Below are positions 48,666 to 52,180 of a DNA stretch of 64,000 nt, one piece after another (within the stretch, counting starts at the first letter, position 1; the number at the start of each line of letters is the position of its first letter). The stretch is from Botryllus schlosseri. Taxonomy: Eukaryota. The notes below the pieces were generated by a model, which saw only the letters and a list, made by a program, of their open reading frames with translations, did not search any database and was not told the DNA's origin. The stretch is from contig JBPPKV010000017.1 of NCBI GenBank assembly GCA_051294905.1, positions 1,302,001 to 1,366,000 of the forward strand, in the 5' to 3' direction. The translations under genes were made by a program, and so were the position numbers.

Positions 48666-49192
48666 GCATCACTTCCAGATTTGCGAAATTTCTGGCACGC
48701 ATTTCTTCGCTGTTGCACATTCTCGACGCGATTAAGCAGTTACCCGGACAACGAATTTTAAAGAGTGGTCAGCTCATAGTGTCCTAAAAGTTTGCACATG
48801 GTTGAGAAACGATAATGCGTGTCCACGATACCATAGAGATTTATGAACTGCAAAACGACCACCCGAGAAAACCTATCAGCTGCAGTTTGAATACGGGGGC
48901 TTTCAGATCAAAATATAGCTGGTGCCAAAAGATTTTCCACACCTTCAACTTTAATTTGGTACCACATCATATGTAGAGCGTAGTGCTGTTGAATTACACA
49001 GCCGTGGACCGTGCGTGTATCACTAACACCATGAGAACAACCATCACGAAGCTGCGATTCAGATACATCGGGCTGTGTTCTAGCAGTAGTAATCAAATAT
49101 GTATTGTTCAAGCTCCTTCTAGGTATCATTTTGAAGCATTTTCGGTCACTATGGTTTCAGCTACCGAGATTTTGAGACTATATTTCAGTTAT

Positions 49193-49498
49193 TGTTATGT
49201 TCGTGTATTTACGTTGGTATCGTTTCACTCTATTTTGTATAGGACTAGTAATTAGCGCCAATCATTATTTCCTCGTGTGCCTTGCGTTGTATTTATACCC
49301 TGCTGTTTTCTGTTGTCTCGTGGTCTTTTCATTTAACTGCACTCTGGATCGTGTCGCTGTCATAAAGTCATTCTGCTGTTTAATATACTGATTTCATATT
49401 GCAACCTCGTCGCATTGAGTTATTGTTCAACCAAGATCAAGAACATAACAATTGGTGTCAGAAGTGGGATTCGAACCCACGCCTCCAAGAACATAACA
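49193..49498 (+). mobile_element. LTR-retrotransposon relic: 258-bp LTR + 35-nt tRNA-Leu complement + second LTR terminus
   Basis: LTR TGTTATGTTC (49193)...GAACATAACA (49450); TGGTGTCAGAAGTGGGATTCGAACCCACGCCTCCA (49453-49487); AGAACATAACA (49488-49498); perfect 5-bp TSD GTTAT on both sides. Confidence 0.9.
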
Positions 49499-52180
49499 GT
49501 TATGCCATGTCCTCTAAATATCTGGCTTCACATGTCTGACCTATGAATGTTTTCAGTTTAATAACATCCATGCAACGTGAGTAAGTATTTATTCTTAGCC
49601 TTTGTCGAAAAGAGAGTTTATTCTTATTATGTTTCGCAGTTTGCACTTTGTTTTGATTTCAAAAAAACTGTTTTATTATATTTTATCCCGAAAACGATTG
49701 TCATTGGGGTTAGAGAATTCTCCAATAATGAGTAATGTCGTTCATGCATCCTTTGTTTGGAGCAAGAGGATTGTCGGCAGACTTTCTTCACTCATTTAAT
49801 GGCATCGGCGTTTCGTATTTTCCTATAAATACCTTCAAAGGAATCCTAATTTATCAACAGGTGGTATTTGCAGACAATTGCGCCTCGCTATGATTTGCCA
49901 GAAACAAGATATTTTCCTGGGTCATAACTTGCGTTGAGATGAGTGCGTCACAGTAGAAACATTTTGAAAGCCTACCTGCACGACTGTATTTGAACAGTCT
50001 TCATGGTTATCAGCAACCTTGCTGGGTGAATTGGATTTGTATCCTACGAAAAATTCCCATCTCACTGGGGTAATTACTGTGCGTTAAAATAACATCCGAG
50101 CTACCAGATCAGGTACGACTTCCTGGTAGATATTTGAATGAGTAATTTCAACAACCGAGCATTGGTTAAGTTGACTGTGTTTTTTTTAGCAGAAAAGGTG
50201 CATCTTGATAGATTATTGAGTTTTCAGTTATAGGCGACATAAGTGGAAATACCTGAAAAAATCCGCAAGGGGGCGATTTGGCGGTCCAGGGGGCGAAAAT
50301 GACGAAGGGGCGACGGGGGGCCAAAATAGCGAAGGGGGCGATAGGGGGGCGATGTCGCGTCAAAACGGCTGACCTTTTTTTTTAGTCAACTCACCGAAAT
50401 TTAGTTACAAAACTGTGTCAAATGAGACATCGAGCTTTTTTTAGTCAGCACGCCGATGATTACAGTTTGTATACCCAATTTTCGGTAAACAAAATTTGGG
50501 GGGTGATGATCGGTGTTGACCTTGAAAAGGGGGCGATGGGTCGAAAAAGATTGGGGACCACTGCTTTACACCAATGATTCGCAACCGCGGCCCCGGGGTC
50601 CGCATTAGCCTTCTTGCGGCCCCAACAAAAATATTGAGAAATCGATTTATGACAAAAAATAAATTATAAAATACTCTTGCTTGGCTTGGAGTCTGGAGTT
50701 TTCAATTAGGATTGCAGGAAAATTGTGAGTAGACTGCTAGGATTACGTCACTGCTGTTTCAATGCAATGTGCCCTAACTTTCCAGTTAAACGAGCAGTAG
50801 ATATAGATATAGGTATTGACAGGACCGTAACTGCCGCACCCCAAGCCCCCCCCCCCAATTGGGGGGAGCGAGCTCGAAGGAGGCCCAATATTATTTAGTG
50901 AATTAGCATGAATTATAGAGTATTTTATGAAATGTTTTGCAACTTTTTCGAAAATTATTCGCGCTGTGCGCGATTTCAAGTTTCCAAGTTGGGTGCTCTT
51001 CTGACAAGATAAAATACGCAAGATTTATAGAAGTGGGCATATCGGCGTTGGCCATTACCTCGCCACGACGCACGAAGACATATAAAGTTTTACGCCATGT
51101 AACATGCGACTCCAAGAAGTGTGCCAGAACGATCGGTAGCGAGAAAACCTTGGCCGAAAAGAACTGCCCTTACGCTAGGGTTACCATATTTTTGTGAAGC
51201 AAATTCCGGACACTCTTTAGCGCCCACTAGTGTATTTTAAAATGGGGTGTAGCACATTGTCCGTCATTATGACGTCACACTAGCAAAGCATTGCCCATCG
51301 ACTGTATAATACACAGGAATGCAGTGGAACTAGTGGAACATAGGTCATGAATTGGGCCATCTGTAATGTGCTATCCGGTGATTGCTACTTGCTAGGGTCT
51401 GCAATCGATTTCTTCACGGGCCGGATGAAATCGTCTGGTGGGCTGTGTCTGGCCTGTCGGGATTGTGCTCGACAGCCCTGCTATACTGTTTGGTTGGTGC
51501 GGCTATCTGGTAATGTGTTATAATCAGGTCCTAAACGACATTTATCATGTCCCCTTCCACCCAAAAAAAGCACTGATCTTGGGCCCACGGGTCCATGGGT
51601 CCACGGGTCGATGTAACTTGTTAGGCACTTAGTATAGGCCTATGCATTTGGCTGTTAAATTTTATCGTCCTCATCAGTAACCAGTTTGTAAAGAAAAACA
51701 CTGGCGGAACGTGTTAGTGCATGCGGTCCGCGGATCGTACTTTGCCCACCCCTGGTTTATACTGTATATTCACACCCGTATCAGGGGTGGTACACTGGTG
51801 GAAATTCACGCTCGTCTTTTCGCTCAGATTGTCGTTTCGATTGTAGCGCCATTTTCCATATTCTATGACCTCGGCAATGGGGAAACTTCGTTTTATCTTT
51901 TTCGGAAATGCCTTTTTCTCAACGGTTGACGTGAGCGCATTCTAGTACAGGGATCTTGCCAATGGATTTGGAGCGTGGAATGCATTCCACGGCGGCATGC
52001 TTCAAAGCGTCATTAAAATTTGAATTCATTGATTCTACATCAATTTAATTTTACTTGCAACGAGATATAGTTTCTTCAAGTTTATAATAATCGAAACAAA
52101 CCATAAATACGTAACATTTATGTCATGTACTATAATGTCGATTAATCACCCAACGAAGATACCGATTCTTTTCGGCGTTC

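Follow-up and report, generated by a model that had tools for sequence, protein, structure and literature searches.

A 306-bp insertion in the Botryllus schlosseri genome composed of one LTR, a partial tRNA-Leu(CAA) copy and a second LTR terminus, a probable fossil of aberrant reverse transcription

The window analysed here, a stretch of 64,000 nucleotides (G000:C17:1302001-1366000) from an assembly of 495.5 Mb in 219 contigs, contains on its plus strand a 306-bp insertion between two copies of the pentanucleotide GTTAT (49188..49192 and 49499..49503), both read directly from the sequence. The insertion starts with a complete LTR of 258 bp (U3-R-U5, 49193..49450) of a Ty3/Gypsy-type family, which has TG...CA ends and perfect 10-bp terminal inverted repeats (TGTTATGTTC and GAACATAACA). 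This LTR is followed by the dinucleotide AT (49451..49452), the spacer between U5 and the primer binding site (PBS) that is present at every 5' LTR/PBS junction of the family, and by a 35-nt copy of a tRNA-Leu(CAA) (49453..49487), whose first 20 nt (49453..49472) are equivalent to a PBS and correspond to tRNA nt 76-57. The last component is a second LTR terminus, AGAACATAACA (49488..49498). It comprises the last 11 nt of U5, is identical to 49440-49450 and carries the integrase CA at its end. At the putative template-switch junction the dinucleotide CA (49486..49487) is common to the tRNA copy and to the LTR (...atCAAGAAC), and the second terminus is 13 nt long when these overlapping bases are included.

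An earlier note on this DNA had proposed the layout GTTAT-LTR-AT-35-mer-LTR tip-GTTAT, and every part of it was located to the base. This applies to the 258-bp LTR with its 10-bp inverted repeats and to the 2-nt CA microhomology with a 13-nt match to the LTR end as well, the latter being found as a direct repeat in the window. For the 28-nt core of the 35-mer the window contains a single occurrence, compared to 0 expected from 100 shuffles. A 3' fragment is not expected to be called as a tRNA gene, and ARAGORN indeed reported none for the window. Further copies of either LTR family dealt with below were looked for elsewhere in the window and not found. A polypurine tract (PPT), an internal region and a second U3-R are all absent from the 306 bp. 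The insertion is therefore functionless and was dead on arrival.

The left 300 bp of flanking sequence match C9:14498962-14499261 with 97% identity and the right 300 bp match C9:14499257-14499555 with 95% identity. Both matches overlap by exactly 5 bp, a single GTTAT, which indicates that the paralogous segment on contig C9 represents the empty site and that the 306 bp were inserted in one piece, producing a target site duplication (TSD) of 5 bp. Integration as one unit with GTTAT as TSD, as claimed before, is thus supported by the flanks. Positions 48893-49798 of the window and G000:C9:14498962-14499555 form a segmental duplicate of 95-97% identity, from which the insertion is absent on C9. 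Positions 48893-48990 of the window are part of a dispersed repeat of ~95 nt, for which ~33 further matches with 75-95% identity are spread over many contigs.

LTR families are assembly-prone, and a chimeric read or a collapsed repeat might in principle have produced the structure. We regard such an artefact as very improbable. The perfect TSD, which has the usual length for this family, and the empty paralog with its overlap of exactly 5 bp support the assembly at the junction indirectly, and dozens of other loci exhibit the same class of structure. In addition, contigs of 4 sequencing runs hold 75-82% of the words of a 1.3-kb stretch, the sample probably being the assembly's own and not an independent one.

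The junction between the tRNA copy and the LTR tip is single copy: it was found nowhere else in the 495-Mb genome with up to 2 mismatches allowed. The idea of a 306-bp minimal retroelement, which had been put forward in case the unit was repeated, therefore has to be given up, as there was no amplification. The insertion does possess an LTR together with a strong PBS, and its second terminus is competent for integrase; a non-autonomous, TRIM-like mini-retroelement replicating in trans would use these features. However, its transcript could not complete reverse transcription without a PPT or a second U3-R, and together with the unique junction this makes such an element hardly conceivable.

The LTR of the window belongs to an abundant family (family 1): out of 1197 genomic candidates, at least 43 were scored as matches, and the nearest relative of the LTR is 96.5% identical. 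Altogether, 60 loci were read at sequence level. Full-length parents have a length of ~4.7 kb with LTRs ~4.5 kb apart (L003/L029, L005/L028, L002/L007 and L006/L027). Family 1 is young, as the LTR pairs of these parents are 98-99.6% identical. The pol domains RVT_1, RT_RNaseH, Integrase_H2C2 and rve were found in this order in L013, L031 and L029 (of the full-length family 1 reference, the parts on both sides of the middle ~1.2 kb were read in one copy), and a member of a second family (L034) shows the same domain order, too. The succession of reverse transcriptase (RT), RNase H and integrase is the one of Ty3/Gypsy elements and identifies the parent, as far as domain order can tell, as a Ty3/Gypsy-type (Metaviridae) LTR retrotransposon. 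Atlas look-alikes of the parent pol are generic Gypsy pol clusters. A PPT adjoins the 3' LTR in L029 (...AGGAGAGGAC, directly followed by TGTT). The TSDs of family 1 comprise 5 bp not only in the window (GTTAT), but also at L057 (GGTTG) and L059 (ATACT), where both ends of the product were read. Domain order, PBS, PPT and TSD all fit a Gypsy parent, which had been postulated, as a putatively Mag-like one, from the TGTT..AACA ends, the Leu PBS and the 5-bp TSD.

The 35-mer was compared with the tRNA-Leu genes of the host. All of its 35 nt are the exact reverse complement of the 3' end of the tRNA-Leu(CAA) genes at L032 and L033, i.e. of their 3' exon, plus CCA. The copy spans the CCA, the discriminator base, the 3' strand of the acceptor stem and the whole T arm, A58 among its bases, and extends over the 3' half of the variable arm. 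Both genes contain an intron of ~30 nt after position 37; they were read directly, and ARAGORN in bacterial mode made no call on these intron-containing genes. The tRNA-Leu(CAG) has a different acceptor stem and a different variable arm and ends with ...TGTCA, in contrast to ...TGACA in tRNA-Leu(CAA). This difference points to tRNA-Leu(CAA) as the primer. The earlier note had recognised the 3' end of a tRNA-Leu of the CAA/CAG type with CCA, reaching into the variable arm; CAA turned out to be right, whereas CAG is excluded by acceptor stem and variable arm. Genes of the CAG type are clustered at G000:C3:36.11-36.21 Mb and CAA-type 3' ends at C4:19.768-19.786 Mb.

In all full-length parents LTR and AT are followed by 20 nt matching tRNA-Leu(CAA) with 1 mismatch and then by an unrelated leader. 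The mismatch is a C at position 14 of the PBS, opposite C63 of the tRNA. An exact-pattern census yielded 306 LTR/PBS junctions, and their composition was determined from 100 listed ones (contigs C1-C5). Among these, 87 are of the short form, and all 87 have a C at PBS position 14 and none a G. The remaining 13 are of the long form, with a G at this position in 12 cases and an A in one. The copy in the window has a G, as in the tRNA. Position 14 thus provides a built-in marker, in which C indicates a PBS inherited from the element and G indicates DNA copied from the tRNA. A tRNA isodecoder matching the C form of the PBS was considered, too, but its only genomic match has an uncompensated T stem and lacks a gene-like context. 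This sole tRNA 3' end with the PBS-type C (G000:C11:22483708-22483742) has an odd flank and is probably a decayed tRNA-derived copy and not a gene, so that no genuine tRNA gene encodes the C.

Since the primer-mismatching C is kept in 87/87 listed short forms, the tRNA-templated copy of the PBS seems not to be passed on in normal cycles of family 1. Alternatively it might be that the mismatch itself is selected for, which would explain the universal C among the listed short forms as well. One may speculate that the PBS mismatch weakens the correct second-strand transfer and raises the error rate.

A genome-wide search with a pattern over tRNA nt 4-33 plus spacer revealed that the window locus is one of many. 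A tRNA copy of at least 33 nt adjoins an LTR at ~44 other family 1 loci, at 8 loci of family 2 and at 1 locus of family 3. The LTR of family 2 (LTR2) has ~176 bp and ends with ...AGAAACA, and the PBS directly adjoins it. In all ~54 tRNA copies A58 is unchanged. For family 1, the long forms make up ~13% of the exact-match 5' junctions (13 of 100 listed). We inspected 22 of the ~54 junctions. Read-through ended at tRNA nt 35-49 in 22/22, mostly at 38-42, and none of these 22 extends beyond nt 49, which is tRNA position 38 directly before G37. G37 is m1G in eukaryotic tRNA-Leu, and RT is blocked there. The limit of 49 nt fits either an RT stop at m1G37 or the end of a 3' tRNA half, which are inseparable by sequence.

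A T-to-C difference at nt 36 of the tRNA copy, corresponding to a variable-loop A read as G, is common to L023, L041/L042 and L054. No tRNA gene encoding this variant was found in a search of the genome. The variant may be a signature of modification or editing or a parallel mutation; in L054 it may perhaps stem from the target.

Nearly every one of the 22 inspected junctions is distinct. Only L041 and L042 have a junction in common, and it is located within a duplicated segment whose flanks are shared as well. As the long forms are internally deleted and their junctions differ almost throughout, they are products and not a replicating lineage. Whether other loci have the structure of LTR, 35-mer and LTR end had been named as a point to check. 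LTRs with a long tRNA copy do occur elsewhere, with different junctions and TSDs, and the layout with the LTR tip recurs in a family 2 locus described below (L058), but the very junction of the window does not. These results also bear on a simpler origin of the insertion, which the earlier note had named as the outcome that would speak against its proposal: an internal deletion of a parent that already carried the 35-nt tRNA match. Long forms are common, with ~13% of the exact-match 5' junctions listed, and a sublineage with a long PBS is conceivable in principle. Nevertheless, every full-length copy examined has the C-marked PBS, whose match ends at 20 nt before the leader begins, the long forms are internally deleted with almost all junctions different, and the sole shared junction is explained by the duplicated segment. 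Because the parents lack the 35-nt match and carry a C where the window has a G, such a deletion is not borne out, and we consider it highly unlikely.

The sequences to which the tRNA tails are joined fall into several groups. Six junctions lead to same-sense internal positions of the element and then on to the 3' LTR (L008, L039, L031, L060, L013 and L057), which corresponds to deletions of ~0.4 to >3 kb. Three lead to antisense element DNA (L004, L038 and L059) and four to sequence that was not placed (L023, L036, L054 and L056). The landing sites in element DNA of either orientation are in keeping with a mis-transfer. Microhomology at the mapped junctions amounts to 0-2 nt. The junction in the window lands in the same sense in the last 11-13 nt of U5, as would fit products of a deferred second-strand transfer.

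The locus L058 (G000:C4:9942215-9945237, minus strand, oriented positions 1317-1562) is a family 2 counterpart of the window. Here the 176-bp LTR2 is followed by a 48-49 nt copy of tRNA-Leu(CAA) and by the last 20-21 nt of LTR2, with the flanks CAAAG and CAAAC. L058 thus has the architecture of the window insertion, which arose independently in the second family. The LTR end and the repeated tip of L058 differ by 2 substitutions, suggesting an older event.

Further loci exhibit more complex arrangements. L038 (G000:C2:38163218-38166240, minus strand) is a head-to-head structure of LTR, AT and 38 nt of tRNA copy joined to an inverted copy. The inverted copy starts at an unprocessed U5-AT end and runs into the inverted 3' internal region, which points to an end-to-end switch of template with another cDNA terminus as acceptor. 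L054 (G000:C3:37845977-37848999, minus strand) consists of an LTR and a tRNA tail, and the second LTR terminus is absent. It is flanked by a direct repeat of 17-24 nt of the target, and up to 7 nt are common to the target and the tRNA tail. The arrangement resembles an integration at one end only, in which the right junction arose through microhomology to host DNA. L004 (G000:C11:26889504-26890524) is a tandem array in which LTR pieces alternate with PBS forms, both long and short, and with a 3' internal fragment in antisense orientation; two of its tRNA copies are of the long form and reach nt 48.

The U5 terminus is involved in 3 of the 22 junctions (window, L058 and L038), compared to ~0.1 under a model of uniform landing. 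Because the U5 end is physically close in the reverse-transcription complex, this excess fits a jump of RT and not random deletion in the genome, and it favours an event within the complex over a later genomic deletion. A two-step origin of the window locus has to be weighed against this. First, a deletion derivative with a long tRNA copy, similar to L057 or L059 (LTR-AT-tRNA-internal remnant-LTR), would have been inserted, and later a microhomology-mediated genomic deletion would have removed the part that begins at tRNA nt 36 and stops 11 nt short of the 3' LTR end. Derivatives of this kind exist with intact TSDs, a deletion inside the element would preserve the GTTAT duplication, and the CA microhomology fits end-joining equally well as template switching. 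However, this requires that the right breakpoint happened to lie within the final 13 nt of a unit measuring at least 1 kb and spared the terminus. Moreover, the rare layout arose again independently in family 2, and L038 also joins its tRNA tail to the exact U5-AT terminus, bringing the U5 end to 3/22 junctions. Two separate steps are in our opinion an unlikely explanation.

We consider it probable that the 306-bp insertion is a fossil of aberrant reverse transcription, its source being a Ty3/Gypsy-type LTR retrotransposon with tRNA-Leu(CAA) as primer. In such an event, plus-strand strong-stop DNA (U3-R-U5-AT) would be copied from the minus strand, and RT would pass its normal stop after 18 nt of the tRNA, the PBS, and proceed through A58 and the T arm into the variable arm, resulting in 35 nt altogether. 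Since tRNA sequence enters DNA only by plus-strand copying of a primer still present on the minus strand, the strong-stop DNA would have run 17 nt past the normal stop. The 3' tail of this strand would not be complementary to the PBS complement of the minus strand, making the normal second-strand transfer impossible. The tail may then have re-paired by means of the 2-nt CA microhomology located 13 nt from the U5 end, which is the 5' end, of the minus-strand DNA. Running off the minus-strand template, RT would have regenerated a U5 terminus usable by integrase, and the minus strand could still have been completed normally. The molecule with its two integrase-competent ends would have been integrated as a heteroduplex with a 5-bp target duplication, and the short plus strand would have been fixed as the 306-bp insertion by repair or replication. 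The sequences themselves show the make-up of the insertion, the tRNA as source of the 35-mer, its lack in the parents, the entry as a single unit and the repeated occurrence at other loci. We infer this order of events inside the particle, the resolution of the heteroduplex and the modification state of the primer; a hypomodified primer would be consistent with the unaltered A58 in the ~54 copies. Read-through of the plus-strand strong-stop DNA followed by a jump to the LTR end had already been proposed, and the C-marked 20-nt PBS of the parents, the recurrence of long tRNA copies and the family 2 locus L058 argue for it.

A more general reading can be offered tentatively. In at least 3 families of Gypsy-type elements that use tRNA-Leu(CAA) in this species, read-through of the primer might be unusually frequent, affecting ~1 in 7 of the fixed 5' LTR junctions of family 1. 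The genome might then hold an in vivo map of RT stops on the native tRNA at 35-49 nt with a hard limit before G37, and the tRNA-templated PBS might normally not be inherited in an animal Gypsy element, as in Ty1. Possible reasons for the high read-through are a primer without an effective A58 stop or the conserved PBS mismatch that would weaken second-strand transfer. The C/G marker in the PBS offers a rare opportunity to read from natural copies which of the strands passes on its PBS. The end points of read-through could be compared with maps of tRNA modifications, so that m1A58 and m1G37 would become testable as RT stops outside the retroviruses. The window locus itself is inert. Its value is that of a clean record of an RT error, dated by its context and complete with TSD and empty site, and it is notable mainly for this clean preservation and for the frequency of ~50 sister events in the genome.

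Several known structures resemble the insertion in part. Like a solo LTR, it has a single LTR within the original TSD. A solo LTR formed by recombination has no spacer, PBS, tRNA sequence or second terminus, and was rejected in view of 48 extra bp that are not encoded by the parents (AT, the 35-nt tRNA copy and the 11-nt LTR tip). With TRIM and LARD elements the insertion shares its very small size, LTR-derived ends and a PBS. An identity with these was rejected as well, since they are multicopy elements with two complete LTRs and a PPT, whereas the unit in the window is present once, contains a single LTR and lacks a PPT.

Primer tRNA sequence in reverse-transcribed DNA has precedents. Defective avian retroviral DNA with primer-tRNA sequence was reportedly described by Olsen and Swanstrom in J Virol in 1985. 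For murine leukaemia virus (MLV), a circular DNA with a tRNA copy between two LTRs was described (Colicelli & Goff, J Virol 1986;57:674, via PMC12220202), and the reverse-transcribed primer tRNA between LTR termini is a feature of the window unit, too. According to that citing paper, the MLV circle was unintegrated, originated from a mutant virus and contained two full LTRs with a nearly complete copy of tRNA(Gly). In contrast to this circle as described there, the window unit is integrated with a TSD, its tRNA copy is partial, and no more than 11 nt of the second LTR are present. The PBS marker has its counterpart in Ty1, for which the title of Lauermann & Boeke 1994 (cited in PMC5371799) claims that the tRNA-templated PBS is not inherited. 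In contrast to Ty1, the element is here of the Ty3/Gypsy type in a marine organism, and the conclusion is drawn from genomic copies instead of experiments with marked elements.

The mechanism itself is already known, since it has been described for HIV-1 proviruses (PMC12657518). In 44 proviruses, tRNA(Lys-3) inserts of 7-54 nt were found to mark the deletion junctions (Hardy et al., Commun Biol 2025, PMC12657518) and were attributed to a "deferred (delayed) second-strand transfer" giving mismatched duplexes. When read-through passes A58, the plus strand is no longer complementary to the minus strand (PMC8599865). As in HIV-1, the 5' LTR and the PBS are intact, and additional nucleotides of the primer tRNA come next (7-54 in HIV-1, 35-49 in our study). 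Likewise, the tRNA insert joins a downstream position of the element, and the plus strand carries the insertion in a duplex that would be mismatched before its resolution. A58 was altered in 5/44 HIV-1 cases (PMC12657518) compared to 0 of ~54 here. Further differences concern the landing site in the window, 11-13 nt from the U5 end, by which the whole interior and nearly all of the 3' LTR are missing, and the setting, which is the germline of a marine host with a Ty3/Gypsy-type element and a tRNA-Leu(CAA) primer. In contrast to HIV-1, fixation in the genome has taken place, and the events are frequent (~13% of the exact-match 5' junctions listed). These loci indicate that deferred second-strand transfer also operates in germline Ty3/Gypsy-type retrotransposons and that it is a major source of deletion derivatives of these elements, the products of which are still integrable.
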